Virus record (IMG/VR): IMGVR_UViG_3300014494_000005
Span: 186,001 to 250,000 of that record
Strand: one strand, 5' to 3'
DNA length: 64,000 nucleotides
In this document: positions 50,874 to 63,142 of the stretch, piece after piece
How positions within the stretch are numbered: the first letter of the stretch is position 1
Layout: each line of letters begins with the position of its first letter
Translations under genes and position numbers: made by a program
The notes under the pieces: model-generated
Databases searched by the model: none
What the model was told of the DNA's origin: nothing
Seen by the model: only the letters and a program-made list of their open reading frames with translations

Positions 50874-51080
50874 ATGAGTAAATTATCAGAAATTTATACT
50901 GGGTGGAAAAATTTCACTTTTCCAAATCTTAAAACAGAAGAATTAGCAAAAAAAAGAATTGAAATTTGTGTTAACAATTGTGATAAATTAAATAAAAGAA
51001 ATTTCTGTAAACTTTGTGGCTGTTATATGCCCGCAAAAGTAAGAAGTCCTAAATCGCATTGTTTTTTAAAAAAATGGTAA
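50874..51080 (+). CDS. Small Cys-rich protein
   Basis: RIEIC..C.......C..CGC.M.AK......C..KKW. Confidence 0.6.
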   Translation: MSKLSEIYTGWKNFTFPNLKTEELAKKRIEICVNNCDKLNKRNFCKLCGCYMPAKVRSPKSHCFLKKW

Positions 51081-51221
51081 TTAAATAGTATTTGTTGTAA
51101 CTACATATGAATCATCTAATTCTAATACATTGTTTTTTGATAATTCATTAAGTAACTCATTTTTTCTTTTATCAATTAATTCATTAACTTTATTTAATAT
51201 TTTTTTTCTCTCATTTGTCAT
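51081..51221 (-). CDS. Small hypothetical protein (46 aa)
   Basis: Read by hand (MTNERKKILNKVNE...). Confidence 0.35.
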   Translation of the reverse strand: MTNERKKILNKVNELIDKRKNELLNELSKNNVLELDDSYVVTTNTI

Positions 51222-51223
51222 GA

Positions 51224-51838
51224 TTAGCAATAAGGAATATTTTGAATCTTATCATTCATTTCTCTTGTACGGATATCCAATTTAGTTTCTGTTCCAATAA
51301 AGTCTGCAGTATATTCCCTAATAAATAACATTTGTATTTTTTGTGGTGCTTTTTTGAATGCAATAAATTCTATTTCATCACCGTCTTCAGTAGATAATGT
51401 AACATTTATATCATTCCAATTTAATGAGTTAAACCATGATTCACCATATGGTGCAACATCATTACCACCCTTATCATAAAAACCATCTTTACTAATTGAA
51501 ATATTATCGCTATCGAAATTTAAATAAAATATAATTGGTTTTTTTTGTAGGTCATAAGTATATTGAATTTTCAAGTAATATTCAATTGTAAGTTTATTTG
51601 CATCATCTAAATCCTCGTCCCAATTTCCACCAATACGAGCATCAGCAACTTCTACAATTTTTATTTTATTTTTTTTACTTAAAAGTGAATCACAAATAAA
51701 TTGTTTTTGCATATCTTCATTTTTTAGCAAAGTAATGTCTTCCTGTCCTTTAAGATGTTCATCATTACCTAAAAAATCGAATTCTGTAATTACTTCATTA
51801 ATTATTTTTATGATTTTTTTATTCTTCATCAAAATCAT
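51224..51838 (-). CDS. Hypothetical protein
   Basis: IIKIINE N-terminus; phage motif at 51844-51852. Confidence 0.55.
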   Translation of the reverse strand: MILMKNKKIIKIINEVITEFDFLGNDEHLKGQEDITLLKNEDMQKQFICDSLLSKKNKIKIVEVADARIGGNWDEDLDDANKLTIEYYLKIQYTYDLQKKPIIFYLNFDSDNISISKDGFYDKGGNDVAPYGESWFNSLNWNDINVTLSTEDGDEIEFIAFKKAPQKIQMLFIREYTADFIGTETKLDIRTREMNDKIQNIPYC

Positions 51839-51929
51839 TTTTTTATAAATACTAAATATATTATTTAAAAGTTGATGAATATCATCAAAAATATTGAAAT
51901 TATATTTACAATCTATGTATTTATGAACA

Positions 51930-52080
51930 GAGAATCATTGCTTAATTAGTAATTAAGTTAGCTCTGAGAACAGGAATGATTTTTAAAAATTTATTGCCAG
52001 AAAGTGGTTATGTAAATTTTTAAGACTTGACTAAGAATTTTAAAAGTAATTGCATCACAATAAAAGTGATGCAATTTTTT
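51930..52080 (+). ncRNA. Candidate structured small RNA
   Basis: GTATTTATG at 51917-51925, nested hairpins, terminator at 52048-52080, no substantial ORF. Confidence 0.35.
52048..52080 (+). terminator. Intrinsic terminator
   Basis: aattgcatcac-aataaaa-gtgatgcaatt-tttt. Confidence 0.8.
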
Positions 52081-52103
52081 ATAAAAATATTTTTCAATTT
52101 TTA

Positions 52104-52134
52104 TTTGTATTTATAATTTTATTGCATATATTTG
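52104..52134 (+). promoter_or_regulatory. Bacteroidota primary-sigma promoter for tRNA operon 1
   Basis: TTTG (52104-07) -N19- TATATTTG (52127-34), exact consensus spacing. Confidence 0.85.
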
Positions 52135-52171
52135 TAGTCATTTTGTTATTCATATTATGGATTTTTAGATT

Positions 52172-52246
52172 ATGAAAAATTTAATACATATTCAACCCCA
52201 ACCACAGCAACATCCACAGATGTCTGAATGGGGAAATTATGCTTAA
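52172..52246 (+). CDS. Attenuator leader peptide 1, MKNLIHIQPQPQQHPQMSEWGNYA
   Basis: 10 of 11 consecutive codons are His/Gln/Pro; contains antiterminator strand GAATGGGG (52226-33). Confidence 0.85.
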   Translation: MKNLIHIQPQPQQHPQMSEWGNYA

Positions 52247-52277
52247 ATTTTTCGAAAGAAGTTTTAGGTTAATGTTG

Positions 52278-52305
52278 ACCCCATTCGTAAGAGTGGGGTT
52301 TTTTT
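52278..52305 (+). terminator. Attenuator terminator 1
   Basis: accccattc-gtaa-gagtggggt-tttttt; its 5' arm CCCCATTC is complementary to 52226-52233. Confidence 0.9.
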
Positions 52306-52316
52306 ATTATATATAT

Positions 52317-52401
52317 CGGGGTGTAGGTCTGTAGTTGGTAGCAGTCCTGCCTTGGAAGCAGGTGGAGAAATCCCTCGCACGTTCGAACCGTGTCACCCCG
52401 A
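52317..52401 (+). tRNA. tRNA-Pro(TGG) with long variable arm
   Basis: cggggtg/caccccg acceptor; cctgc-CTTGGAA-gcagg; gga-gaaa-tcc variable hairpin; TTCGAAC T loop. Confidence 0.9.
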
Positions 52402-52473
52402 AGTGATTGATGTTAAATTACTTGCACGTAGTAATCACTGCATAACCAAAAGGTTAACTAAAAATTTAGCAAA

Positions 52474-52484
52474 GTTCTTTGAAA
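52474..52484 (+). promoter_or_regulatory. boxA-like antitermination motif GTTCTTTGAAA
   Basis: Resembles rRNA-operon boxA; preceded by small hairpins; similar motifs at 54522 and 57995. Confidence 0.5.
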
Positions 52485-52511
52485 TACCTAATAATAATAT
52501 ATAATTTATAT

Positions 52512-52585
52512 GGGATGATTGGTGTAGCGGTAGCATGCCAGATTGTGGTTCTGTCGGGGAGGTTTCAAATACCTCATCACCCCCA
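52512..52585 (+). tRNA. tRNA-His(GTG)
   Basis: Encoded G-1 opposite C73; TTGTGGT anticodon loop; gaggt-TTCAAAT-acctc T arm. Confidence 0.88.
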
Positions 52586-52642
52586 AATTCTCTAGTGATG
52601 TAATTAATATATTGCTGGTTTGAATATATTGAAACAATAAAT

Positions 52643-52729
52643 TGTTCTGTGATGAAATTGGCTAAACATGTCAGACTTTGACTCTGATGCTCTTTAGTGA
52701 GTTTGTAAGTTCGAATCTTACCAGAACAG
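52643..52729 (+). tRNA. tRNA-Gln(TTG) with long variable arm
   Basis: tgttctg/cagaaca acceptor, G73; tcaga-CTTTGAC-tctga; gctc-tttagt-gagt variable hairpin. Confidence 0.9.
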
Positions 52730-52778
52730 CAATATTAATTTTTTTAATTATCTTTGTTAAAATTTTAAATTAATTATT

Positions 52779-53732
52779 ATGTCATATAATTTATTTCTTG
52801 ATGACTTCCGCAGTCCTATCGATTCTTTTTATTATTTAGGGAATCCAATATATAATATTCTTGATTGGAAAATTGTACGAAATTATGATGAATTTGTGAA
52901 AACGATTCAAGAAAATGGTATTCCAGAAACTATTAGTTTTGACCATGATTTGGAAAATTCTGAAGAGTGGATGGATATTATTGGATATGAAGGAATTTAC
53001 ATGGTTTCAAATTTTGGTCGTATTTTAAGAACAAAAAAATCAAAAGGTACAACAGGTAATAATATTTTAACTCCATTAAAAAACATATCTGGATTATATG
53101 TAACATTATATAATTGCGGTAAAAATATACACAAAAAAATTCATAGATTAGTTTTAGAATCATTTATGGGTATTAATAATGAAAAATCACAAGTTAATCA
53201 TATTGATGGAAATAGATGGAATAATCATATTAATAATTTAGAGTGGTGTACATCATCTGAAAATATATGGCATTCACATAATGTATTATATAGAGATTTT
53301 TCTGCATATGGTGAAAACCATAAAAATAGTATGACAGTATCTCAATATGATATAAATAATAATCTAATTAATATTTATGGTTCAGTTAATGAAGCAGGAA
53401 GGCAATTAAATATTAGTTTTTCGAACATTGCAAAATGTGCTAGAGGTGAAAGAAAAATTGCTGGTGGATTTATTTGGAAATATGAAAATCTCAAAGTAAC
53501 AATAAATACAAAAATTTCACACATTGAATATAAAGATTATGCTAAGAATTTCTTTATACCTAAATATGAAGAAAAAACTGGTTATCATTGTGCTAAATGG
53601 TTAATAGATTATTGCATTGACAATAAATTAGAATTACCAAAAACAATTTTAATACACTCAATGAATCCAGTTGGAAGTCGAAATATTAAATCATTATTTG
53701 ATAGTTATTTCAAATCACTTAATTTATCTTAA
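52779..53732 (+). CDS. Cyclic-phosphate-processing receiver-like (cREC) protein with an in-frame NUMOD4-HNH endonuclease insert
   Basis: LFLDDFR..ISFDHDL N-half and EEKTGYHCAKWL..HSMNPVG C-half flank EEWMDIIGYEGIYMVSNFGR (NUMOD4), VNHIDGNRWNNHINNLEW (HNH) and a NUMOD1-like end. Confidence 0.7.
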   Translation: MSYNLFLDDFRSPIDSFYYLGNPIYNILDWKIVRNYDEFVKTIQENGIPETISFDHDLENSEEWMDIIGYEGIYMVSNFGRILRTKKSKGTTGNNILTPLKNISGLYVTLYNCGKNIHKKIHRLVLESFMGINNEKSQVNHIDGNRWNNHINNLEWCTSSENIWHSHNVLYRDFSAYGENHKNSMTVSQYDINNNLINIYGSVNEAGRQLNISFSNIAKCARGERKIAGGFIWKYENLKVTINTKISHIEYKDYAKNFFIPKYEEKTGYHCAKWLIDYCIDNKLELPKTILIHSMNPVGSRNIKSLFDSYFKSLNLS

Positions 53733-53735
53733 TTT

Positions 53736-54152
53736 TTATTTAACCCAAAATTTTCCTAATAATGTAATAATTGTGATTAGTATTGATATTCCCGCAACAA
53801 TGTATGCAATCATAGCATTTCCACCTGCTTTTATATTTTCAGATTTTTCGACTTTAATTGTAAGTGCATCAATTTTATCATTAGCATTTTTTAACAATAC
53901 TTCTGTCTCAATACGTGGCATTAATGTTCTCGACTGGTCACCAAGTTGTGCACGAAATTCATTAACACATTCAAAACGTTTTTCTGTTGCAACCTCTGCC
54001 TTATTAACAGCTAATTCCATTGCTTGATACCTTTGAGTTACACGTTCGTCTCTTTCAGCAAGCAATATTTTATAATGTTCATATTGATTTTTTAATACAA
54101 CATCATAATGCTCTTTAAGAGCTTCAAGCGTCCAAATTGTGTTATTTTCCAT
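53736..54152 (-). CDS. Coiled-coil protein with C-terminal TM helix (holin-like?)
   Basis: Long coiled coil ending in a hydrophobic helix. Confidence 0.5.
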   Translation of the reverse strand: MENNTIWTLEALKEHYDVVLKNQYEHYKILLAERDERVTQRYQAMELAVNKAEVATEKRFECVNEFRAQLGDQSRTLMPRIETEVLLKNANDKIDALTIKVEKSENIKAGGNAMIAYIVAGISILITIITLLGKFWVK

Positions 54153-54250
54153 TAATTTATTAGTGTTAGATATTTATTAGCCATTTAATGTTAATAAATA
54201 CTTTTTAGAACGTCTAAAAATATTGTATATAAAAAATAATTTAAAAAAAG

Positions 54251-54281
54251 TTTGTATATATTGTAACATTTTATATCTTTG
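54251..54281 (+). promoter_or_regulatory. Bacteroidota primary-sigma promoter for tRNA operon 2
   Basis: TTTG (54251-54) -N19- TATCTTTG (54274-81), followed by CA. Confidence 0.85.
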
Positions 54282-54321
54282 CAACGTATTTAGAATAAAA
54301 GAAACTATTTTTAATTTTAAA

Positions 54322-54414
54322 ATGATGAAAAAAGTACTCGACATATTGGTATCAGAGATGGCAGTTGTCCTATTATGGGCAGATGCAGAAGATACATTAT
54401 ATTCAGTCGGGTAA
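54322..54414 (+). CDS. Attenuator leader peptide 2, MMKKVLDILVSEMAVVLLWADAEDTLYSVG
   Basis: Codons cover every anticodon of the downstream operon; contains antiterminator strand CAGTCGGG (54404-11). Confidence 0.85.
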   Translation: MMKKVLDILVSEMAVVLLWADAEDTLYSVG

Positions 54415-54450
54415 TATTTATTACAAATAACACCTCCTTTCTTAAATGAA

Positions 54451-54486
54451 AAATCCCGACTGCTAAAATGGTCGGGATTTTTTTTT
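54451..54486 (+). terminator. Attenuator terminator 2
   Basis: aaatcccgac-tgctaaaatg-gtcgggattt plus T run; CCCGACTG (54455-62) is complementary to 54404-54411. Confidence 0.9.
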
Positions 54487-54490
54487 AGAA

Positions 54491-54520
54491 TTTGTAACAA
54501 ATAAAATTTTTCTTTGTATA
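54491..54520 (+). promoter_or_regulatory. Variant phage promoter TTTGTAACA-N15-TGTATA just after the attenuator
   Basis: One mismatch to the motif seen exactly at four other sites. Confidence 0.45.
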
Positions 54521-54521
54521 C

Positions 54522-54534
54522 TGTTCTTTGACAT
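54522..54534 (+). promoter_or_regulatory. boxA-like motif TGTTCTTTGACAT
   Basis: Resembles rRNA-operon boxA; 12 nt before the first tRNA. Confidence 0.55.
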
Positions 54535-54545
54535 GTTGGAAATTC

Positions 54546-54615
54546 GTTCTCGTAGTATAATGGTTAGTATGTATCACTGTCTATGATAAGGAGGGGTTCG
54601 AATCCCACGGGGACG
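54546..54615 (+). tRNA. tRNA-Asp(GTC)
   Basis: gttctcg/cggggac acceptor, G73; tatca-CTGTCTA-tgata; T stem imperfect. Confidence 0.85.
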
Positions 54616-54686
54616 GCAATGATTATTAATGTGTTATAATAATTATCTGTTATATTAAATTATATTAAAAATGAAATAATTAATTT

Positions 54687-54770
54687 GCTGCATTATACAA
54701 GTGGTTAAAGTGGCTTGCCCTTCAAGCAAGTGCCGAAAGGCTTCGCAGGATTCGAATTCCTCATGCAGTA
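54687..54770 (+). tRNA. tRNA-Glu(TTC) with C33 and long variable arm
   Basis: gctgcat/atgcagt acceptor; cttgc-CCTTCAA-gcaag; gcc-gaaa-ggc variable hairpin. Confidence 0.8.
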
Positions 54771-54797
54771 CTGAAATATAAATTTAAAATTTAAATT

Positions 54798-55187
54798 ATG
54801 AAAAATTTGTATATTAATGCAACTCACAGTACACCCGCAGTTTTTTTTAATATTAATAAAGGTATTCTTACAATAACAGGAAAATCATTTCCTGAGAATT
54901 CCTCAATGTTTTTTGATGATATTGATAAAGCATTAGATGAATTTATTAAAGAACATTCTAATGTTGATTTAACAATTACTTGTGAATTTGAATATATTAA
55001 TTCATTATCAAATAAAGCAGTTTTTAATATATTAGAAAAAGCAGCAAAATCTCTTAATAATGTTATAGTTGTTTGGAAATATGAAGAAAACGATGAAGAT
55101 ATGAAAGAGCAGGGAGAATTTTTTGAAACATCTTTTAAAACTAAAATTCATTTTCATTATAAACATTTTTTAATACAACCAGAATGA
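54798..55187 (+). CDS. SiaC-family (DUF1987) regulatory phosphoprotein
   Basis: T.STP.V.F....G.L.I.GKSFPEN...F; EYINSLS; VWKYEENDEDM.E.GE.F. Confidence 0.8.
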   Translation: MKNLYINATHSTPAVFFNINKGILTITGKSFPENSSMFFDDIDKALDEFIKEHSNVDLTITCEFEYINSLSNKAVFNILEKAAKSLNNVIVVWKYEENDEDMKEQGEFFETSFKTKIHFHYKHFLIQPE

Positions 55188-55192
55188 TAAAT

Positions 55193-55265
55193 GCTCGGTT
55201 CGTCTAATGGTTAGGACAAAAGATTCTCATTCTTTTAAATATGTTTTCGATTAACATACCGAGTA
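55193..55265 (+). tRNA. tRNA-Glu(CTC)
   Basis: gctcggt/accgagt acceptor; aaaga-TTCTCAT-tcttt; atgtt-TTCGATT-aacat. Confidence 0.88.
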
Positions 55266-55343
55266 CAGAAATAAATATGATGTTGGAAATACTAACATTA
55301 TCATATAAAATTTGATTTAATGCTGGCTTTTATCAACAAATAT

Positions 55344-55418
55344 ATTCCCTTAACTCAGATGGGTCAGAGTGTTTGCCTTACAAGCAAAATGTCGTAGGTT
55401 CGAAGCCTACAGGGAATA
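55344..55418 (+). tRNA. tRNA-Val(TAC)
   Basis: attccct/agggaat acceptor; tttgc-CTTACAA-gcaaa; canonical cloverleaf. Confidence 0.95.
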
Positions 55419-55503
55419 CAAAAGATTGTAGTGCCAAATACAATCATAATATCGCCTTAATTACCGATATTTAATATTTATCGGTTAAAAAGGTGATACC
55501 TTT

Positions 55504-55591
55504 CTCTCAGTGTTGTAACTGGTAGCCAAGCTGGTTTAAGAAACCAGTGCGAAATAATAGTAGCGTGTCGGTTCGAGTCCGACTTGAGAGA
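55504..55591 (+). tRNA. tRNA-Leu(AAG), A34, long variable arm
   Basis: ctctcag/ttgagag acceptor, A73; ctggt-TTAAGAA-accag places AAG at 34-36. Confidence 0.8.
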
Positions 55592-55599
55592 CAATAAAC

Positions 55600-55674
55600 G
55601 TGAATGTAGCCAAATGGTTAATAGGCAATCGATTTAGACTCGAAAATTTGCTGGTTCGACTCCAGTCATTCACA
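55600..55674 (+). tRNA. tRNA-Leu(TAG) with short variable loop
   Basis: gtgaatg/cattcac acceptor; tcga-TTTAGAC-tcga; ~5-nt variable region. Confidence 0.8.
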
Positions 55675-55740
55675 CAAAGATATTTTTTAAAAAACAATAA
55701 TCTTTCCTAATATTTCATGTATTTATATTAAATATAATAT

Positions 55741-56469
55741 ATGAAATATACAAAAGAATTTTTAGAACCAATTGTTCTTAAAAGCAAAGCAATTAGTGAA
55801 GTATTACGTTATTTAAAATTAAATGCTAATGGTGGTAATCATGCACATATTTCAAAAACCATAAAAAAATATAATATTGATACATCACATTTTCTTGGAC
55901 AAAGTTGGAATAGAGGTAAATCGCCACGAAATAGACATACCATAGAAAGTTTCATTAAACTTGTTTTAAAATTAAATGGTATGGGATGGCAAAGTCATCA
56001 AATAAAATTAAAATTATTTGAATTAAATTTAAAAGAAAGAAAATGTGGAATTTGTGGACAAAATGAAATATGGAATAATAATAAACTTGGTTTAGAGTTA
56101 GACCATATTAATGGAATACACAATGATAATAGATTAGAAAATTTAAGAATTTTATGTCCAAATTGTCATTCACAAATGCCAACACAAGGTGTTAGAAATA
56201 TTCATAATGGAAAAATAATTAACATTAAAGTTCATAAAGAAAAAATAATAAAAAATAAAATAATTAATATTTGTAATTGTGGTAAAAAAATAAAAAATAA
56301 TTCTAAAACATGTGTTAATTGCTATTCATTAAAACAAAGAAAAGTTAATAGACCATCATTTGAAACACTTCAAGAAGAAGTTAAAACATTAGGATATACT
56401 GGAACTGGAAGAAAATATGGTGTGAGTGATAATACGATAAGAAAATGGATTAAATTTTACACGAAATAA
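55741..56469 (+). CDS. HNH homing endonuclease inside the tRNA array
   Basis: CGICG...LELDHINGIHNDNRLENLRILCPNCH; C-terminal HTH; GTATTTATA at 55719. Confidence 0.9.
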   Translation: MKYTKEFLEPIVLKSKAISEVLRYLKLNANGGNHAHISKTIKKYNIDTSHFLGQSWNRGKSPRNRHTIESFIKLVLKLNGMGWQSHQIKLKLFELNLKERKCGICGQNEIWNNNKLGLELDHINGIHNDNRLENLRILCPNCHSQMPTQGVRNIHNGKIINIKVHKEKIIKNKIINICNCGKKIKNNSKTCVNCYSLKQRKVNRPSFETLQEEVKTLGYTGTGRKYGVSDNTIRKWIKFYTK

Positions 56470-56472
56470 AAT

Positions 56473-56548
56473 GGGGTATGGGACTGCTAGGGTTGGTCAT
56501 CTCGTCTGCACCGAGAAAATCAGGAGGATTCGAATTCCTCATGCTCCA
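56473..56548 (+). tRNA. tRNA-Ala(TGC) with C33
   Basis: ggggtat/atgctcc acceptor with G3:U70 and A73; tctcg-TCTGCAC-cgaga. Confidence 0.85.
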
Positions 56549-56587
56549 CATTATCAAATAGTTATATAGATAATCACAATAAAATAT

Positions 56588-56661
56588 GGCACAGTACTCC
56601 AATTGGTAGAGAGAAACGGCTTAAACCCGTTAAAGTGTGAATTCGAATTTCACTTGTGCTA
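56588..56661 (+). tRNA. tRNA-Leu(TAA) with short variable loop
   Basis: ggcacag/ttgtgct acceptor; aacgg-CTTAAAC-ccgtt; 5-nt variable region. Confidence 0.82.
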
Positions 56662-56683
56662 CAAAATAAATTAATTATAATAT

Positions 56684-56755
56684 ACGTCTGTCGTCTAATG
56701 GTTAAGATAACGGCTTCCAACCCCGTGGATGAGGTTTCGATTACTTCCAGACGTG
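56684..56755 (+). tRNA. tRNA-Trp(CCA)
   Basis: A1-U72 and G73; acggc-TTCCAAC-cccgt with a 31-39 mismatch. Confidence 0.82.
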
Positions 56756-56821
56756 CTAAAATAAAAAATAAATATTATATTATTTGCATATATTTATATA
56801 ATAAACTAAATTTGTCAAATT

Positions 56822-57550
56822 ATGTTAATAATAAATTACAATAAAAAAGATTATTACGATGGTGTTGTTGGTACGATGGGTATCGATAAAACACTTGTTT
56901 ATGACCGTAAAATAATTGAGGTTGAAGAAAAAAAAATTCCATCAATATTTCAAAGAAAGGGATTTTCTTGGAAAAAAAGTAAAGATTCACCTTTTTTAAA
57001 TATTGAAAATCATACAATAAAAAATGAACAACATAAAAATTATCAAAATTGTAGTTCTTTTATTATTGGATTTTGTGGAAAACTATATATTGGTTGGAAA
57101 TTATATAGCGAAAACAGAAAAGTTTATCCAGAAAAACTTACAACTACAATTACATATGATTTTGATTTAATAAAAACAATTATTGATAATAAAGGTTGGT
57201 ATGGAAACCTTGAAGAGCAGTATAATTATATTAAAAATTATAATTCACTTCAATTATTTAGAGATTTTAAAGCACCTGTTTTTATTTATGATAGTGATTA
57301 TAATAGAATAAATATTGGTCATTATCATAAACGTAATGAAAAACTTTTTATTAATCCAATTTTAAGCGATTATCATTTTTATAAAATATTTGATAGTTTT
57401 CAAGCATTTCAAGAAATAAGTATGTTTATGGGTGGTGTGCTTGGTAAAGGCGAAAAAGAAATTATTGAAGTGGCTGATAAATATAAAATTACTCAACATG
57501 GTTTTGATTATAAATGGAGTTTTAGAAAAAAATCTGAAAAGAATAAATGA
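56822..57550 (+). CDS. Hypothetical protein
   Basis: 242-aa ORF within the tRNA operon. Confidence 0.6.
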   Translation: MLIINYNKKDYYDGVVGTMGIDKTLVYDRKIIEVEEKKIPSIFQRKGFSWKKSKDSPFLNIENHTIKNEQHKNYQNCSSFIIGFCGKLYIGWKLYSENRKVYPEKLTTTITYDFDLIKTIIDNKGWYGNLEEQYNYIKNYNSLQLFRDFKAPVFIYDSDYNRINIGHYHKRNEKLFINPILSDYHFYKIFDSFQAFQEISMFMGGVLGKGEKEIIEVADKYKITQHGFDYKWSFRKKSEKNK

Positions 57551-57813
57551 AACAAGAATTGCATAAAATATTTATAATTCCTGCTCGATTTATTAAACAA
57601 ACTAAAGATAATAAATATGTTATTCGATGTCTAATTGAAAAAAATATTACTGAAGACCGTATATTTGATGATAATTCACTTAAAGGATTAATAAATCCTA
57701 AGTATTTATTAATCGGAATAATGACAGGAGTTGGATATATGCAAATAAATTTTGTTGATGCTAATGATTATGAAAAAATGTTTAATGTAAAATGGAAAAT
57801 TTTAGTAAAATAA
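57547..57813 (+). CDS. Hypothetical protein
   Basis: ATGA-type overlap with the previous gene. Confidence 0.5.
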   Translation: MKQELHKIFIIPARFIKQTKDNKYVIRCLIEKNITEDRIFDDNSLKGLINPKYLLIGIMTGVGYMQINFVDANDYEKMFNVKWKILVK

Positions 57814-57986
57814 GCGATGAAATAATATCACAACTTAAATCTATATGTTATAGTGGTGATTTATCTGATATTGGTAATGAAATTGGTATTGTAATTGCTA
57901 AATATTTTGATAAAGATAATACTGTTGATGATTTCATTCATGGTTTAAAACATGGAATATCATTAACTGATGGAACACATGGTTAA
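57792..57986 (+). CDS. Hypothetical protein
   Basis: 64-aa ORF. Confidence 0.45.
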   Translation: MENFSKISDEIISQLKSICYSGDLSDIGNEIGIVIAKYFDKDNTVDDFIHGLKHGISLTDGTHG

Positions 57987-58009
57987 TATAATAAGTTCTT
58001 TAAAATAAT

Positions 58010-58372
58010 GGGGATGAATGGATTTGACTGTATGTAGAAAAATGATGTAAGCAAGTAGTAGTTGAATCGGACTACTTTTAAAAAGGTTCAAAACAATAAA
58101 TGCAGAAGACATTATGTCTATTCCTACTTCCTTGACAAAAGGAAATAGCGTATTTGTAAAGAGTGCTGAACTTGCAATTGCGTAATAGGAAAAAAATAAA
58201 CAGCAAAAAACTTCCAAGTCAGAAGGGAAGTAAAAACAATTCTGGACAGTTTTGTAGTTGTTCTGGAAAAATACAATTAACATTTTGCTGATTTAGGAAA
58301 ATCAAATAAACTTGTAGAAAACTTATTAATCACATTGCAACACCGGGGAATCGATGCCCCGCATCTCCACCA
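58010..58372 (+). ncRNA. ssrA: tmRNA; tag reading frame AEDIMSIPTSLTKGNSVFVKSAELAIA (58102-58182, stops TAA TAG)
   Basis: GGGGATG...GGATTTGAC 5' end pairs with CATCTCC-A-CCA 3' end with G3:U; ATAAAT-GCA resume context; hydrophobic Ala-ending tag. Confidence 0.93.
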
Positions 58373-58408
58373 AATATTTTTCATCTCCACAGTATTTATA
58401 TTAAAATA

Positions 58409-58960
58409 TTGATGGAGATGAAAAATTTAAAAAAAAGAAAAACTAAATTAATTAAATGCGATAATTGTGGAAATGATTTTGAAAAATCGATATCCGAAAT
58501 AAAAAGAAATAAAAATCATTTTTGTTCATTAAGATGTTCAGCAATCCATCGTAATGATATCAATCGAAAAAATTTTGAAGGATATATAGGAAATCCAAAA
58601 TTTTTAATTGCAAATAATCATAAAGATGAATATACAGGTTTTCGTGATTTTATTAGAAGAGCAAAACAAAGAAATAAATTAGGGAATTTAACATTAATTG
58701 ATTTAAAAGAACAATGGCAAAAACAAAATGGAATTTGTCCTTATACTGGAATACAATTAGAATTGCCAAATTATTCTAAAACAAAAAAATTTTCAATACA
58801 AGAAGCAGCATCTTTAGATAGAATAAATTCAAATAAACCATATGAAAAAGATAATATTGTTTTTGTAAGTACACCAATTAATTATATGAAAAATACGATG
58901 ACAGAAGAAGAAACAATTGCATTTTGTAAAAAAATTGCATTATTTTGGAATAATAAATAA
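58409..58960 (+). CDS. HNH-like endonuclease with N-terminal zinc ribbon
   Basis: CDNCG..FCSLRCS; CPYTG..SLDRINSNKPYEKDNIVFV; GTATTTATA at 58392. Confidence 0.75.
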   Translation: MMEMKNLKKRKTKLIKCDNCGNDFEKSISEIKRNKNHFCSLRCSAIHRNDINRKNFEGYIGNPKFLIANNHKDEYTGFRDFIRRAKQRNKLGNLTLIDLKEQWQKQNGICPYTGIQLELPNYSKTKKFSIQEAASLDRINSNKPYEKDNIVFVSTPINYMKNTMTEEETIAFCKKIALFWNNK

Positions 58961-58961
58961 T

Positions 58962-59048
58962 GGCGAAGTGATGAAATAGGTAGTACATGCAGGTCTTAAA
59001 AACCTGTGAACAGTAATGTTCGTGTGGGTTCGATTCCCATCTTCGCTA
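58962..59048 (+). tRNA. tRNA-Leu(TAA), canonical class II
   Basis: ggcgaag/cttcgct acceptor; caggt-CTTAAAA-acctg; long variable arm. Confidence 0.93.
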
Positions 59049-59092
59049 CGAATAAATTAATTAAAGTATTTATATAAAAACTTATAATAACA

Positions 59093-59257
59093 ATGAATAT
59101 ATTAATTATAAATCAATCAACACCAATTAACTATCCAATAATAATTGTACCTGTTGGTTGTCAATTTAATATACCTAATAGAATAATGTGTAGTGGTGGT
59201 TTTCTTGTTTATAATAAACCATCTGAAAAAATATTAATTAATTATGGCAAATATTAG
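59093..59257 (+). CDS. Small hypothetical protein (54 aa)
   Basis: Read by hand; follows GTATTTATA at 59066. Confidence 0.35.
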   Translation: MNILIINQSTPINYPIIIVPVGCQFNIPNRIMCSGGFLVYNKPSEKILINYGKY

Positions 59258-59360
59258 AAAACCACATCCAAAAGAAGATGATTGTGGATGTGGAAAATCA
59301 GTTAAAATAACTGAAAGAAAAAAAATTGAATATAGACGAATTATAAAGAAAAGAGGATAA
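59244..59360 (+). CDS. Small basic protein with CGCG motif (38 aa)
   Basis: MANIRKPHPKEDDCGCGKSVKITERKKIEYRRIIKKRG. Confidence 0.4.
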   Translation: MANIRKPHPKEDDCGCGKSVKITERKKIEYRRIIKKRG

Positions 59361-59443
59361 CTCCTTGTGATGAAATTGGTAGCACGTGCTCGCCTCAAAA
59401 GCGAGTGCCTTCGGGCGTGTCGGTTCGACTCCGACCAAGGAGA
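59361..59443 (+). tRNA. tRNA-Leu(CAA)
   Basis: ctccttg/caaggag acceptor; ctcgc-CTCAAAA-gcgag; gcc-ttcg-ggc variable arm. Confidence 0.95.
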
Positions 59444-59462
59444 CAAATAGAAGGGAAATTTT

Positions 59463-59957
59463 ATGTATATGGTATTACAGATTCCCATGCGTGAACAGAA
59501 TTATGATTTTGATTGTAGTCTTGCAGTAGCATGGTCGTACTTAAAACATTCTAAAATAAAAGTTGATTATAATACACTTTTAAAAATATCAAAAATTTCA
59601 CCAATTGATGGATTATGTCCAGAAAAATTAGTTATTTTACTAAAAAAATTTGGTTTAGAAACCAATTTAGAAGAACGTAAAAATATTAAATATTTAAAAA
59701 ATCAAATAATTACTAAAAAACCAGTAATTGTTCTTTTACAAGCAAATAAAGAATATAAGAAATCTTGGAAAAATACTTGGACTCACGGACATTATTGCAT
59801 TATATTTGGTTTTGATGACTTTCGGGTATTTATTTATGACCCATATATTGGTGGAATTAAATTATTCGCATATGACCAATTTAATAATCGTTGGCATGAT
59901 GAATGGAATGGTAAAAAATATATTAAGTCAGTAATAATAAAAAATGAAAATTTATGA
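59463..59957 (+). CDS. Peptidase C39-like cysteine protease
   Basis: EQ..DFDCSLA (Gln/Cys), GHYCII.GFD (His), YDP (Asp). Confidence 0.8.
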   Translation: MYMVLQIPMREQNYDFDCSLAVAWSYLKHSKIKVDYNTLLKISKISPIDGLCPEKLVILLKKFGLETNLEERKNIKYLKNQIITKKPVIVLLQANKEYKKSWKNTWTHGHYCIIFGFDDFRVFIYDPYIGGIKLFAYDQFNNRWHDEWNGKKYIKSVIIKNENL

Positions 59958-60118
59958 ATTTTGGATTAAGAAAAAATAGTAAAATAAAATTCAAAGAAAT
60001 ACCTGAAGAAATTGATGAATCTGAAATTGATTTAGATAATCCAGAAGCAATGGAATTAACATGGAAAAGCATTGAATGGTCATTGAAAAAACATAAAGAT
60101 ATAATCTCAAAAATATAA
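59954..60118 (+). CDS. Small hypothetical protein (54 aa)
   Basis: Read by hand; ATGA overlap with the C39 gene. Confidence 0.4.
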   Translation: MNFGLRKNSKIKFKEIPEEIDESEIDLDNPEAMELTWKSIEWSLKKHKDIISKI

Positions 60119-60170
60119 AATATGAAAAAAATTTTGAATTCTTGTAACGCACTAAAGCGTAACAAGAAAA

Positions 60171-60500
60171 ATGGGAAATAAAAATTTAGTAAAAACAACC
60201 ACAAATCGTGGCGAATTCAATCGTGCATATAAATTGCATCTTGAACGAATAGGAAAAATTCATTGTTCATACTGTGGTTTTCATCTTGGTGAAAATAATG
60301 GCAAAAAATGGTATGGTGGAATTATTTACGATGACATGGAAACTTGTCATGGTAAAAGAAAAGGAAATAATACAAGATTTCCAAACTGGAAATTGGTTTC
60401 TAAAAATAGAAAACAATGGATGCGAAAACCAATTAAAATTGTTGAAGAACATAGAATTGGACACAAAAGAACATATGTTGAGATTAAATTCTCAACATAA
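60171..60500 (+). CDS. Hypothetical basic protein
   Basis: CSYCG.H motif; WK..SK.RKQW ending. Confidence 0.5.
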   Translation: MGNKNLVKTTTNRGEFNRAYKLHLERIGKIHCSYCGFHLGENNGKKWYGGIIYDDMETCHGKRKGNNTRFPNWKLVSKNRKQWMRKPIKIVEEHRIGHKRTYVEIKFST

Positions 60501-60503
60501 TTT

Positions 60504-60574
60504 AGCGATGTCATTCAACGGTAGGATATCTCTCTCATAAGGAGCAAATACGAGTCCGATTCTCGTCATCGCTA
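60504..60574 (+). tRNA. tRNA-Met(CAT), probably elongator (Ile2 not excluded)
   Basis: agcgatg/catcgct acceptor with G2-C71, C3-G70, A73; CTCATAA loop; T loop TCCGATT. Confidence 0.8.
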
Positions 60575-60580
60575 CAAATA

Positions 60581-60605
60581 AAAAAATTCGTCATTTGACG
60601 AATTC
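60581..60605. terminator. Terminator hairpin at the end of tRNA operon 2 and the convergent gene
   Basis: aaaaaattcgtca-tt-tgacgaatt. Confidence 0.65.
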
Positions 60606-60625
60606 AGAATTCCAACATGTTTATT

Positions 60626-61072
60626 TTATTGAAAATTTACTTTGCAAGTTTGATTTTTGAAATCAAATTCTAAATCCTTAACATATAATGATTTACCTAA
60701 TATAAGTGAAGTTTTTTCGTTAATAACGAATTTCCATTTAGTTTCTTCGATATTTTTTTGCGATTTTTGTTCTATTTCATCTGAATGAATATTATGCATT
60801 TCCATATTATAAGTTCCTTCAAGTTTTTCTATACTAATAATAAAATTTTCAATACCCATATCATTTAACCAAAATGAAACTTGCCATGTGATTATAATAT
60901 TACTTTCTGTAACATCAGCATCAAATTCTGTTGAAAAACCACTATAATTATAAAAATACACATTTTTTACGAGTTGTTTAAAATTAAAATTATCACCACC
61001 TATAACATATGATTCATTAATTACATTCTTTTCAATTTCTTCATTTACCACTTTTTTTATAGAACTCACCAT
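60626..61072 (-). CDS. Hypothetical protein
   Basis: IKKVVNEEIEKNVINE N-terminus; phage motif at 61088-61096. Confidence 0.55.
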   Translation of the reverse strand: MVSSIKKVVNEEIEKNVINESYVIGGDNFNFKQLVKNVYFYNYSGFSTEFDADVTESNIIITWQVSFWLNDMGIENFIISIEKLEGTYNMEMHNIHSDEIEQKSQKNIEETKWKFVINEKTSLILGKSLYVKDLEFDFKNQTCKVNFQ

Positions 61073-61148
61073 AAAAACACAATTTTATATAAATACTCTA
61101 TGTTTTCTTAAATTTCTTTTATACATTTGCACATATTAAAACAAAAGA

Positions 61149-61178
61149 TTTGTAACATTATTACAAAAAATTCGTATA
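61149..61178 (+). promoter_or_regulatory. Phage promoter motif TTTGTAACA-N15-CGTATA (plus TACATTTG at 61122-61129)
   Basis: Exact motif 8 nt before ATG 61186. Confidence 0.65.
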
Positions 61179-61185
61179 AATTAAA

Positions 61186-62049
61186 ATGGTTTATAATTAT
61201 AATAAACAACATTGTTGGCAATATGATATTAGGTTAAATAATTTAACCAATGATTTAAAACAAGCAAATATAACTCTTGATGAATCGAAAAATTTAAAAG
61301 TATCTGATTTTAAATTTCAATTTGAAGAAAAAGATTTATGTTTTCAAGAAATTAAAAGTTTTATTGAAAAACATGAATGGTTGGGTAGAGTAAGTTTATA
61401 TCCAACACATATTTTTACTGCACGATATAATGGAATTTTAGCAGGTGTAGTAATTATTGATATGCCAAGTGTGTTTTCGAAATTATTGGGAGAAGAAACA
61501 AAAAAGATTGAAAGATTAATAAGCAGAGGTGCTTGTATTAGTTGGTCGCCCAAAAATTTAGGTAGTTCTTTGATTATGTTTGCAATTAATTGGATGGTAA
61601 AAAATACACAATATCGTTTATTTGTTGCTTATTCAGATGTTGAAGCTAAAGAATTAGGCACAATTTATCAAGCATGTAATTTTTATTATTTGGGTAAGAA
61701 ATCTGGTGCAAAAAATCAATATAAAATTGAAACCGGAAGATGGGTATCCGATAGATATTTTAGAGCAAGGTCTGTTTATAAAAGACTTGCAAAAGAAAAT
61801 GAAATTATTTGGCATGATGAATGGCAAAACGGAGATAGTGTAATGTTTGATAAAATGCCGGAAGAAATTGCATTACAAATAAGAAAACTTTCAAAGGACT
61901 ATTTATTGTCCTGTGAAAGTAGAGAAATGAAACCAAAACATAAATATGCATATGTTTTGGGTAAAAATAATACTGAAACAAAAAAATTAAGAAGAATATT
62001 TATAGAAAGAAACAAAATTTATTCATATCCAAAAGAAAGGGGAAATTAA
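61186..62049 (+). CDS. Mom-like GNAT-fold DNA modification protein
   Basis: LAGVV, RLISRGAC..PKNLGS.LI, VAYSD...ELGTIYQACNFYYLG, KHKYAY.L. Confidence 0.7.
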   Translation: MVYNYNKQHCWQYDIRLNNLTNDLKQANITLDESKNLKVSDFKFQFEEKDLCFQEIKSFIEKHEWLGRVSLYPTHIFTARYNGILAGVVIIDMPSVFSKLLGEETKKIERLISRGACISWSPKNLGSSLIMFAINWMVKNTQYRLFVAYSDVEAKELGTIYQACNFYYLGKKSGAKNQYKIETGRWVSDRYFRARSVYKRLAKENEIIWHDEWQNGDSVMFDKMPEEIALQIRKLSKDYLLSCESREMKPKHKYAYVLGKNNTETKKLRRIFIERNKIYSYPKERGN

Positions 62050-62050
62050 A

Positions 62051-63142
62051 GTGAAATTACTTGAAAAAGTTGATTGGAAAATATTAAATAACTATATTGA
62101 TAATAGTCTCATTATAGCAAATAAACACCCAAATTATGAAATTTGGATTTTGAACTATTCAGTAAAAGCTCAATCAAAAAAATTTTGGGACGAATATACT
62201 ATGTCTTGTCGTGGATTGGTTGTTGATGTTGAAGGTAATATTTTAGCACGTCCATTTATGAAATTTAAAAATTATGAAGAATATGATTCTTCTGAAATTG
62301 ATTTATATATGACTCAAGAATTTGAAATATTTGAAAAAGTCGATGGTTCACCTATTATCTTATTTTACTATGCACCACGTATGGAATGGATTGTGGCAAG
62401 TAGAGGTTCATTTATTTCAGAACAATGTATTGAAGCACAAAAAATGATTGATATTAACATATACGATAAATTGAATAAAAATTGTACTTTTTTATTTGAA
62501 GTATTATATCCAGAAAATCGTATTGTTGTTGATTATGGTGATAGAAGAGAACTTGTATTACTTGGAAGAATTGTAACTGAAACCGGAATTGAAGCATATT
62601 ATAATGAATTAGTTGCACAATATTCAAATTATTTTTCAATTGTTAAGAAATATGATATAAATAATATTAAAAATCTTAAAGATTTACAAAAACTTGAAGA
62701 AGAAAATCGTGAAGGATTTGTTGTAAGATTTAAAGATGGTTTTAGAGTTAAAGTTAAGTTTGCAGAATATTGTAGATTACATGTTATTTTAACAAATGTT
62801 TCAAACTTAACAATTTGGGAACATTTAATGAATAATTATGATTTTGATTCATTACTTGACAGAGTTCCAGATGAATTTTATAATTGGTTAAAGAAAACAA
62901 CAAAAATTATACAAACTGATTTTAATGAAATTGAAAGATTGTCATTAAAAGAATTTGTAAGAATTTACCATGTTAATGGAATTACAAATCGTAGAGAATT
63001 TGCTATGGAAGCATTAAAGACAGAATATCGTTCAATATTGTTTAAGTTATATGACAAAAAAAACTACGATGATATTATTTGGAAACAAGTAAGACCCGTT
63101 TACAGCAAACCATTTAAAGATGGTTTTGAATATAGTGTTTAA
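62051..63142 (+). CDS. RNA ligase (T4 Rnl1-like)
   Basis: CRGLVVD..ILARPF.KF.NY; FEKVDGS motif I; FLFEV; EGFVV...KVK. Confidence 0.88.
   Translation: MKLLEKVDWKILNNYIDNSLIIANKHPNYEIWILNYSVKAQSKKFWDEYTMSCRGLVVDVEGNILARPFMKFKNYEEYDSSEIDLYMTQEFEIFEKVDGSPIILFYYAPRMEWIVASRGSFISEQCIEAQKMIDINIYDKLNKNCTFLFEVLYPENRIVVDYGDRRELVLLGRIVTETGIEAYYNELVAQYSNYFSIVKKYDINNIKNLKDLQKLEEENREGFVVRFKDGFRVKVKFAEYCRLHVILTNVSNLTIWEHLMNNYDFDSLLDRVPDEFYNWLKKTTKIIQTDFNEIERLSLKEFVRIYHVNGITNRREFAMEALKTEYRSILFKLYDKKNYDDIIWKQVRPVYSKPFKDGFEYSV

Follow-up and report, generated by a model that had tools for sequence, protein, structure and literature searches.

A short open reading frame whose codons correspond to the tRNAs encoded downstream of it, followed by an intrinsic terminator, is found in front of a tRNA array in a giant phage of Bacteroidota. 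This unit is likely to be a ribosome-mediated transcription attenuator of the trp/his type that gates the phage tRNA array, although its function is inferred and is without experimental evidence. The order of elements, beginning at 54250-54545 of the window (the whole 64,000-nucleotide stretch of DNA analysed), is promoter, 30-codon open reading frame (leader 2), intrinsic terminator, rrn-type boxA, and then 12 tRNA genes and a tmRNA. The anatomy of the unit, its conservation, its covariation and its codon match are shown below. An earlier note, made by a model without database searches, had observed a leader and a terminator before the tRNA genes and had interpreted them as an attenuator. The observation is confirmed and the interpretation is supported, with all computational predictions of the attenuator reading passed; segment 1, the boxA and the tmRNA described below had not been seen.

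Promoter and leader open reading frame

The leader promoter is of the Bacteroidota type and is situated at 54250..54294 on the + strand, its two elements being TTTG (54251-54254) and TATCTTTG (54274-54281). It had been described as a second exact promoter, which needs correction: promoter-consensus matches in the window occur at chance frequency (nine seen vs 9.9 expected), and a consensus match by itself is no better than chance. The call rests instead on conservation in diverged relatives and on an identity across 45 nt with the promoter of leader 3, which is elsewhere in the same genome. A promoter-like site is also present at 56783 and could possibly drive the distal genes independently of the leader.

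The leader open reading frame (54322..54414, + strand, 30 codons plus TAA) starts about 30 nt past the inferred transcription start site. The upstream region is A-rich and without SD, as is usual 5′ of open reading frames in Bacteroidota, and the requirement of an attenuator for a short promoter-proximal frame in a context fit for initiation is met. Codons 5-24 are almost wholly those of Val, Leu, Asp, Glu, Met, Ala and Trp. Asn, Gly, Phe, Pro, Gln, His and Arg are absent from the peptide, there being no Pro, His or Gln codon among the 30, and Lys, Ile, Ser, Thr and Tyr are limited to eight positions, mostly at the start and tail. The peptide core (..LDIL..VLLWA.EED) is hydrophobic, and its amino-acid sequence is conserved across the leader-2 family.

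The codon match was compared with a null based on the codon usage of 31 long open reading frames in the window, and also with 13,667 real-gene windows. Codons for array amino acids number 22 of 30, with 9.7 expected (P = 5e-6, iid), and 19 of the 30 are decodable by strict wobble, with 8.4 expected (P = 7e-5, iid); neither value is reached by any of the 13,667 windows. The leader covers 11 of 11 distinct anticodons (5.0 expected; P = 2e-5, iid), the real-gene maximum being nine, and this coverage has P = 0.003 when the peptide is held fixed and synonymous codons are redrawn by genome usage. An attenuator requires enrichment of regulatory codons that correspond to the products of its operon, and this is seen here. 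Each array tRNA is matched by just one to four leader codons. The Ile codon ATA is invariant in leader 2, and it has a cognate array tRNA only if the CAT tRNA at 60504 is Ile2.

The leader codons quoted in the earlier note hold exactly, as does its claim that each downstream anticodon has a cognate leader codon; a shuffle test that it had proposed was run and places the codon-anticodon overlap far above shuffled controls. It had also remarked on the G/C-ending codons as unusual in so AT-rich a genome. GAG, CTA and CTC each make up 1-3% of their own codon families, and the G/C richness of CTC, GAC and GTC GGG is also fixed by the need of segments 1 and 2 to pair in the RNA.

RNA segments, terminator and folding

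Segment 1, TACTCGAC (54335..54342, + strand; core CTCGAC), is formed by codons 5-7 and displays a helix with segment 2, both in RNAalifold of 20 sequences and in the single-sequence MFE. Segment 2, CAGTCGGGTA (54404..54413, + strand; core GTCGGG), spans the final codons, extends two bases into the stop codon, and pairs with either segment 1 or segment 3. The intrinsic terminator (54448..54486, + strand) has a 14-bp stem of -18.5 kcal/mol followed by nine T, and contains segment 3, CCCGAC(TG), as its left arm (54455-54462, + strand) and segment 4, GTCGGG (54471-54476, + strand). It is conserved in all homologues and meets the requirement for an intrinsic terminator between the leader frame and the regulated genes. 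A small conserved hairpin, GTAAT..ATTAC (54411..54424, + strand), holds the stop codon, with stems altered in homologues L022 and L034. The pyrimidine motif CCTCCTTTCTT (54433..54443, + strand), situated in the antiterminator loop, is nearly invariant in most homologues. This motif is similar to the 3′ end of 16S rRNA.

The 2:3 pairing consists of 8 bp, CAGTCGGG (54404-54411) being complementary to CCCGACTG (54455-54462). The previously claimed complementarity of the pre-stop sequence to the terminator therefore holds, and the 2:3 antiterminator covaries: extension pairs are 1.35 for cognate vs 0.71 for swapped combinations (permutation P = 0.002), and homologue L007 carries a three-way compensatory change (G to A in segment 2, C to T in segment 3 and G to A in segment 4). 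The GTCGGG core of segment 2 is retained across three different frames of reading, that of L007, that of L022 and that of the remaining homologues. The RNAalifold consensus of the 20 sequences is the 1:2 helix plus the 3:4 terminator, and folding of the leader RNA has z = -4.6 relative to shuffles (0 of 200 as good). A further requirement of an attenuator is satisfied as well: the 1:2, 2:3 and 3:4 pairings exclude one another, and the stop codon overlaps segment 2.

Folding with the ribosome masked predicts the 2:3 helix with P ≥ 0.88 for A-site codons 2-24 and with P ≤ 0.02 from codon 25, and this switch at codon 24/25 coincides with the end of the cognate codons in leader 2. The neat leader-2 boundary is not general, since the cognate codons of leaders 1 and 3 reach segment 2 with little or no spacer. 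At equilibrium without a ribosome, and before segment 4, 2:3 wins over 1:2; termination in the absence of translation, as proposed below, thus rests on folding kinetics.

tRNA array, tmRNA and boxA

Nine downstream tRNAs are detected by default ARAGORN, Rfam adds those at 54687-54770 and 60504-60574, and relaxed ARAGORN detects 12, so that all 12 tRNAs and anticodons listed in the earlier note are upheld at the relaxed setting. The proximal array (54545..56756, + strand; ARAGORN and Rfam) encodes Asp-gtc (54545), Glu-ttc (54687), Glu-ctc (55193), Val-tac (55344), Leu-aag (55504), Leu-tag (55600), Ala-tgc (56473-56549), Leu-taa (56588) and Trp-cca (56684), all on the + strand, with a SiaC-like open reading frame (54798-55187) and an HNH open reading frame (55741-56469) between them. 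Ala-tgc is the weakest call and is obtained at the relaxed threshold only; relatives have the gene at the same place. A phage tmRNA, charged with Ala, is found at 58010..58372 (+ strand; Rfam RF00023, 68.6 bits), and according to ARAGORN relatives have a tmRNA in the same place. The distal tRNAs (58962..60575, + strand; ARAGORN and Rfam), the order of which is conserved in relatives, are Leu-taa (58962), Leu-caa (59361) and a tRNA with a CAT anticodon (60504), which is Met, or Ile2 if lysidine-modified; all three are on the + strand.

A boxA-like processive antitermination signal, GTTCTTTGACATGTTGGA, is present at 54523..54540 (+ strand). The exact 18-mer recurs in 84 viral-contig stretches, in many of them with a tRNA directly downstream, and dozens of Bacteroidota genomes have it in the 16S-23S spacer, between tRNA-Ile/Ala and 23S. 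It agrees at 9 of 11 positions with the E. coli rrn boxA. A sequence match together with use in host rRNA operons, which define an rrn-type boxA, are both found. That it binds NusB/NusE and makes RNA polymerase termination-resistant is inferred from the sequence alone. The phage may thus also borrow host rRNA antitermination for these non-coding operons.

Conservation of leader 2

The alignment comprises 20 distinct homologues, nine of which were located through boxA as an anchor, without use of the leader sequence. An intact open reading frame, segment 2, terminator, boxA and tRNA-Asp are found in 20 of 20. In L008/L015, L017/L021 and L019/L037, Val, Ala, Leu or Glu tRNAs are missing downstream and the leader codons are retained; both the tRNA and the matching leader codons are lost in L053 only. 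Coupled gain and loss of codons and tRNAs, which had been suggested as a comparative check, is not tight within the leader-2 family.

Other leaders

The same phage genome has four leader units, two of them outside the window, and these partition all 20 amino acids among four arrays. The idea that two leaders divide the tRNA set therefore holds and is extended to four leaders and all 20 amino acids. The sister unit, leader 1 (52104..52730), is on the + strand with all its elements: a promoter (52104-52134), an open reading frame (52172-52246) that contains HIQPQPQQHPQ, segment 1, CCCC (52196-52199), segment 2, GAATGGGG (52226-52233), and a terminator (52277-52300), downstream of which are tRNAs Pro, His and Gln. 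Pro, His or Gln account for 10 of its 24 codons vs 2.1 expected (P = 8e-6). In leader 3, 38 of 42 residues are in the set of its own array, and 12 of 12 anticodons (Thr, Cys, Asn, Ile, Ser, Phe, Gly, Met and Arg) are covered. Leader 4 contains YYYGKKSYKK and is upstream of tRNAs Lys, Tyr and Lys.

The rule also holds in at least five further viral contigs for leaders unrelated to those above; three such leaders are in L089, two in L071 and one each in L074, L048, L061 and L044. All array amino acids are present in every one of them, Met being counted via the start codon for two L089 leaders. For the four largest arrays of these unrelated leaders, the probabilities of full coverage are 7e-4, 9e-4, 1e-4 and 3e-5. 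Full array coverage is found in 12 of 12 leaders. The leaders of L048 and L061 contain 17-19 amino acids, once or twice each.

Proposed mechanism and alternative explanations

In the proposed mechanism, transcription would start at ~54290 and the 30-codon leader would be translated as RNA polymerase advances. A fast ribosome would reach the stop codon and cover segment 2 (GTCGGG-TAA), the 3:4 terminator would form and transcription would stop at ~54486. Without translation, segment 2 would be held by segment 1 (CTCGAC), and termination would likewise follow. A ribosome slowed within codons 2-24, nearly all of which are read by tRNAs encoded downstream, would leave segment 2 free as segment 3 emerges, and the resulting 2:3 helix would block the terminator and allow polymerase to continue into the array. 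There it would meet the boxA copied from the host rRNA operon and, by inference, be loaded with Nus factors and cross the untranslated tRNA genes and interspersed homing-endonuclease open reading frames. The outcome would be negative feedback, whereby slow decoding of array-served codons leads to synthesis of the array and accumulation of phage tRNAs turns it off; decoding may be slow where host tRNAs are scarce for the AT-rich phage, depleted or cleaved. The 20 amino acids would be shared out among the four units, each guarding its own subset. That the leader is translated, that ribosomes stall on it, that polymerase reads through and that Nus factors load are all inferences, the first three being without experimental evidence.

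It had been suggested that loss of any one isoacceptor triggers readthrough, and this remains an inference. Since each tRNA has no more than one to four codons, the sum of decoding speeds may be what the unit reports, and not any single tRNA. The sensitivity of classical attenuators depends on runs of regulatory codons, and the response to a single tRNA may therefore be weak.

A related alternative is that the same attenuator hardware senses aggregate translation capacity, i.e., amino-acid starvation, general ribosome slowdown or infection stage, and not individual phage-served tRNAs, the leader-array match merely setting which amino acids count. The small number of codons per tRNA, the suitability of the 17-19 amino acid leaders of L048 and L061 for a summed readout and the weak codon-level coupling inside the leader-2 family are in its favor. 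It is nevertheless unlikely, as the partition of amino acids across four leaders of one genome and the rare codons that match rare-codon tRNAs (GAG, CTA, TTG, AAG, ACG) are hard to explain in this way. Much less plausible still is that the open reading frame, with a terminator of its own, codes for a small hydrophobic peptide that is functional, the tRNAs being expressed through weak readthrough or from different promoters and the likeness to the tRNA set reflecting the richness of such peptides in Leu, Val, Ala and Met. The core is hydrophobic and conserved as amino acids in the family, but the presence of Asp, Glu and Trp, the absence of common residues, and leaders 1, 3 and 4 and the unrelated non-hydrophobic leaders are left unexplained. 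The 3′ end of the leader is, moreover, conserved as RNA in differing frames, and the alternative 1:2, 2:3 and 3:4 pairing exists.

That the unit is an AT-rich spacer with a fortuitous open reading frame and terminator is virtually ruled out. Only the chance frequency of the promoter consensus by itself speaks for this reading, which is refuted by the window statistics (the observed codon match being reached by 0 of 13,667 real-gene windows), by conservation of the unit across the 20 distinct homologues and by full coverage of their own arrays by 12 of 12 leaders.

The attenuator reading can also be put more boldly: leader-peptide attenuators may be a general control of tRNA arrays in Bacteroidota phages, with each array or sub-array preceded by a short open reading frame enumerating its 2 up to 19 amino acids and then by a terminator and often a host-type boxA. 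This generalization is fairly likely. If true, the phage would run translation-speed homeostats, whereby tRNAs are made only upon slow decoding of matching codons, e.g., where the host has few tRNAs or these are degraded or cut by defence nucleases.

Relation to known systems

The enterobacterial attenuators (trp, his, leu, thr, ilv and pheA, and the pheST synthetase operon) likewise have a short promoter-proximal open reading frame rich in regulatory codons, four segments with mutually exclusive 1:2, 2:3 and 3:4 pairings, a stop codon that lets the terminating ribosome mask segment 2 and an intrinsic terminator before the genes. What the phage element would control, unlike these, is not a set of biosynthetic enzymes or a synthetase but tRNA genes together with a tmRNA, and a boxA comes after its terminator. 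In place of runs of one or two amino acids, leader 2 lists seven and leaders in other contigs up to 19. T-box riboswitches also couple charged-tRNA supply to a terminator/antiterminator choice upstream of translation-related genes; however, they act by direct binding of uncharged tRNA and do not depend on translation, whereas the phage element has an open reading frame and not a specifier loop. An Rfam scan of 51000-62000 at E ≤ 1 gave no T-box match, so that the unit does not qualify as a T-box; the only leader-family match in this region was a sub-threshold one to Thr_leader (23 bits vs a gathering score of 55).

The tRNA clusters of T4, T5, jumbo and huge phages likewise consist of a block of tRNA genes interrupted by homing endonuclease genes, with an RNA ligase close by. 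To our knowledge no attenuator or leader peptide is known for these clusters, and a prior description of a leader-peptide attenuator on phage tRNA arrays was not found in the full-text literature searched. The proposed attenuator is of a classic kind; it is its use on phage tRNA genes for which no report was found.

Phage tRNA genes are usually seen as constitutive cargo. The finding suggests that they are regulated by the very process that they serve, and it extends attenuation from one-amino-acid biosynthetic sensors to multi-amino-acid sensors of tRNA supply. Any genome can be screened for the rule that the composition of the leader equals the content of the array. The finding also offers a direct handle on why large phages carry near-complete tRNA sets and when these are expressed, and on whether the sets are a response to depletion of host tRNAs or to defences that cleave tRNA. 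The leaders are possible compact, programmable reporters of codon-specific decoding speed.

With respect to rrn antitermination (boxA, NusB/NusE) and lambda nut, the phage 18-mer is identical to a sequence in the 16S-23S spacer of many Bacteroidota, but unlike in those systems it sits past a conditional terminator in a tRNA array, where Nus binding is inferred. The 18-mer is also close to the Aquifex boxA (PMC3177189).

Codon content of leader 2

Leader 2 is a 30-codon open reading frame (54322-54414) ahead of an array of tRNA genes. Codons for the amino acids of this array occupy 22 of its 30 positions. The number expected is 9.7 under a null model based on the codon usage of 31 long open reading frames of the window (14,566 codons; P = 5e-6), and none of 13,667 windows from real genes reaches this match. 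Under strict wobble rules, 19/30 codons are decodable (P = 7e-5). The earlier note on this DNA had proposed that every downstream anticodon has a cognate codon in the leader, and had asked for a shuffle test of this overlap. The overlap is well beyond the controls: all 11 distinct anticodons are covered versus 5.0 expected (P = 2e-5; real-gene maximum nine), and full coverage has P = 0.003 when the peptide is kept and synonymous codons are redrawn. Within their codon families, GAG, CTA and CTC have shares of 1-3% each and TTG of 11%. For the ATA codon, invariant in leader 2, a cognate exists only on condition that the CAT tRNA (60504) is Ile2.

Other claims of the earlier note also held on inspection of the sequence, i.e., the promoter, the reading frame with the codons quoted from it, a terminator with nine T residues, and the absence of Pro, His and Gln codons. 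The list of twelve downstream tRNAs is reproduced exactly by ARAGORN with relaxed settings. Nine are found by default, and Rfam contributes two more plus a phage tmRNA inside the array (58010-58372, plus strand, 68.6 bits). ARAGORN, default or relaxed, misses this tmRNA in the window; in relatives it detects one at the same position, with tags ending in ..AELAIAA. Ala-tgc is the weakest tRNA call, and relatives have a gene at the same place. Apart from sub-threshold noise, an Rfam scan of 51-62 kb at E ≤ 1 returned the tRNAs and the tmRNA and no other known RNA family.

Several of the tRNAs have unusual forms. A long variable arm is present in tRNA-Pro (52316-52402, 87 nt), tRNA-Gln (52643-52730, 88 nt) and Glu-ttc (54687-54771, 85 nt), the last of which also has C in place of U before the anticodon. 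Leu-tag (55600-55675) and Leu-taa (56588-56662), at 75-76 nt, are without the long arm expected of tRNA-Leu, and their charging identity is therefore uncertain.

Homologues and RNA structure

A leader-derived 16-mer detects 22 true homologues of leader 2 in viral contigs. Further homologues were found with the boxA-like 18-mer GTTCTTTGACATGTTGGA (54523-54540) downstream of the terminator, a query independent of the leader sequence. The alignment comprises twenty distinct homologue versions, and all 20 have an A-rich start context, an open reading frame of 27-37 codons, a terminal GTCGGG, the terminator, the 18-mer and tRNA-Asp. Downstream genes keep a conserved order, Asp, Glu, Val, Leu, Ala, Trp, tmRNA, Leu, Leu, Met, and the tRNAs for Pro, His and Gln are upstream.

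With these 20 sequences, RNAalifold gives two helices: one pairs TACTCGAC (codons 5-7) with GTCGGGTA, which spans the final codons plus the stop, and the other is the terminator (segments 3 and 4, 54448-54486). The earlier note had pointed out that CAGTCGGG (54404-54411), here segment 2, is complementary to CCCGACTG (54455-54462), here segment 3. The complementarity is present, and this third pairing is supported by covariation among homologues. Bases beside the 2:3 core score 1.35 for cognate and 0.71 for swapped pairing (permutation P = 0.002), with A-T, G-C and T-A alternatives at identical flanking positions, and in the homologue L007 one position is altered jointly in segments 2, 3 and 4. 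The three pairings together display the layout of a classical four-segment attenuator; that the leader is translated, and that stalling and readthrough occur, is inferred. The leader RNA folds far more stably than shuffled sequences (z = -4.6). Segment 2 is conserved at the RNA and not the peptide level: it encodes Val-Gly in most homologues, while the homologues L007 and L022 each read it in a different frame.

Folding was modeled with the ribosome footprint masked and the transcript stopping before segment 4. The 2:3 helix then forms with P ≥ 0.88 when the A-site is at codons 2-24, and is absent from codon 25 on; the cognate codons of leader 2 end at this modeled boundary. This layout recurs in the sister leader 1 (52172-52246), its four segments being CCCC, GAATGGGG, CCCCATTC and GAGTGGGG.

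Alternative explanations

Conservation of the region could be attributed to a gene on the minus strand. This was rejected: the minus-strand reading frames have no plausible start, and the plus-strand frame is intact in all homologues. A different reservation concerns the codons themselves, as the G/C-rich CTC GAC and GTC GGG are fixed by RNA pairing, either alongside decoding or in its place. As there are few codons per tRNA, it is also conceivable that the device sums decoding speed over the set and does not sense a single isoacceptor. Promoter consensus matches occur at chance frequency and were rejected as evidence.

The conserved CCTCCTTTCTT (54433-54443, plus strand) resembles the 3′ end of 16S rRNA and is located between the hairpin at the stop codon and the terminator. 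A role as an anti-Shine-Dalgarno mimic or functional core was rejected, as the sequence is not universal (TTTCC in L007; ACTCC in the homologues L017, L023 and L024); nor was a conserved partner for it found in the leader-2 family.

Four leaders in one phage genome

Two more leader-terminator units, leaders 3 and 4, are found outside the window in the same phage genome. Leader 1, in the window, contains QPQPQQHPQ ahead of tRNAs for Pro, His and Gln, and 10 of its 24 codons specify these amino acids. Leader 2 is followed by Asp, Glu, Val, Leu, Ala, Trp and Met tRNAs and the tmRNA. Leader 3 (contig stretch L066:2400-2700) has 42 codons, many of them for Thr, Ser, Ile, Asn, Phe, Arg, Gly and Cys; its array reads Thr, Thr, Cys, Asn, Ile, Ser, Ser, Phe, Gly, CAT, Asn, Thr, Arg, and the match is 38/42 codons and 12/12 anticodons. 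Its promoter is identical to that of leader 2 across 45 nt. Leader 4 (contig stretch L088:370-560) contains YYYGKKSYKK ahead of tRNAs for Lys, Tyr and Lys, with a match of 9/30 (P about 0.02). Across the four leaders, all twenty amino acids are thus split among four arrays.

Unrelated leaders and leader-array coupling

Unrelated leaders of other viral contigs obey the same composition rule. One contig (L089) has three, ahead of Ser-Arg-Pro-Ile-Met-Leu, Glu-Asp-Met-Leu and an array for 16 amino acids, all 16 of which are present in the third leader. Another (L071) has a leader with 18 consecutive residues drawn from Pro, Asn, Gly, Asp, Thr, Ala, Leu and Arg, and a second leader that covers 13/13 array amino acids. 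Thr, Ala, Pro, Gln, Gly and Arg are abundant in the leader of L074, and that of L048 represents 19 amino acids in 32 residues, Pro alone being missing from it and likewise from its array; the leaders of L061 and L044 follow the rule as well. All 12 scored leaders contain every amino acid of their own array (Met was scored via the start codon for two L089 leaders), with chance probabilities of full coverage as low as 3e-5 for single leaders. The end of each of these leaders is also complementary to its own terminator's left arm.

Coupling of leader and array is strong between families but loose within one. Coupled gain and loss of leader codons and tRNA genes, a comparison the earlier note had asked for, was inconsistent within the leader-2 family: three lineages without Val, Ala, Leu or Glu tRNAs retain the codons. 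For Val, the codons persist in three lineages that have no such tRNA, and only in the homologue L053 are tRNA and codons both gone.

The boxA 18-mer and readthrough

In contigs of bacterial genomes, GTTCTTTGACATGTTGGA occurs at 109 loci, mainly in Bacteroidota. It is most often in the rRNA spacer, after tRNA-Ile/tRNA-Ala and shortly before 23S, which is where rrn operons have their spacer boxA. The E. coli rrn operons carry a boxA, with which the phage 18-mer agrees at 9/11 positions, and an Aquifex boxA also resembles it (PMC3177189). By sequence and position the 18-mer is a boxA, and the phage uses the exact rRNA-spacer sequence of the host; Nus binding and antitermination are inferred. In this scheme, polymerase that has passed the attenuator would become termination-resistant via boxA. 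No plus-strand terminator was detected at 54.5-63.1 kb, so one long transcript of tRNAs, homing-endonuclease frames and tmRNA is possible. The Bacteroidota promoter consensus is matched a third time at 56783-56814 (plus strand), immediately ahead of an open reading frame at 56822-57550; this site might start transcription of the distal tRNAs and tmRNA from within the array, or be a chance match.

In other viral contigs the 18-mer also occurs within arrays and immediately after promoters. In some Bacteroides chromosomes (contig stretches L106, L160, L168 and similar) it forms an arm of a perfect inverted repeat away from rRNA and tRNA genes.

Relation to known attenuators and genome context

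Attenuation itself is a mechanism of known kind, shown here as a layout, with function inferred. The tRNA-array target, the phage owner, the multi-amino-acid leader and the coupling to boxA are apparently new. The full-text literature searched, which excludes subscription journals, describes no leader peptide or attenuator ahead of tRNA genes.

The window has a G+C content of ~26%. Among its products are a T4-like portal, encoded on the minus strand at 37128-39137, and a tail sheath, and in the stretches that were compared its identity to IMG/VR contigs, the longest of them 348,923 bp, is 100%. It therefore belongs to a jumbo myovirus. Promoters of the form TTTG ... TAnnTTTG and the boxA make a Bacteroidota host likely, an inference from sequence alone. 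GenBank phage records gave no close relative, the matches being homing-endonuclease fragments and a distant portal only.

Homing-endonuclease-like open reading frames (HNH, NUMOD) lie between tRNA genes on the plus strand at 52779-53732, 55741-56469 and 58409-58960. Also on this strand, a SiaC-family phosphoprotein (54798-55187) and a C39-like peptidase (59463-59957) are encoded inside the array, and a Mom-like protein (61186-62049) and a T4 Rnl1-like RNA ligase (62051-63142) just downstream of it. The ligase hints at tRNA repair. The open reading frame at 52779-53732 displays a cyclic-phosphate-processing receiver domain (cREC_REC) at its N-terminus.
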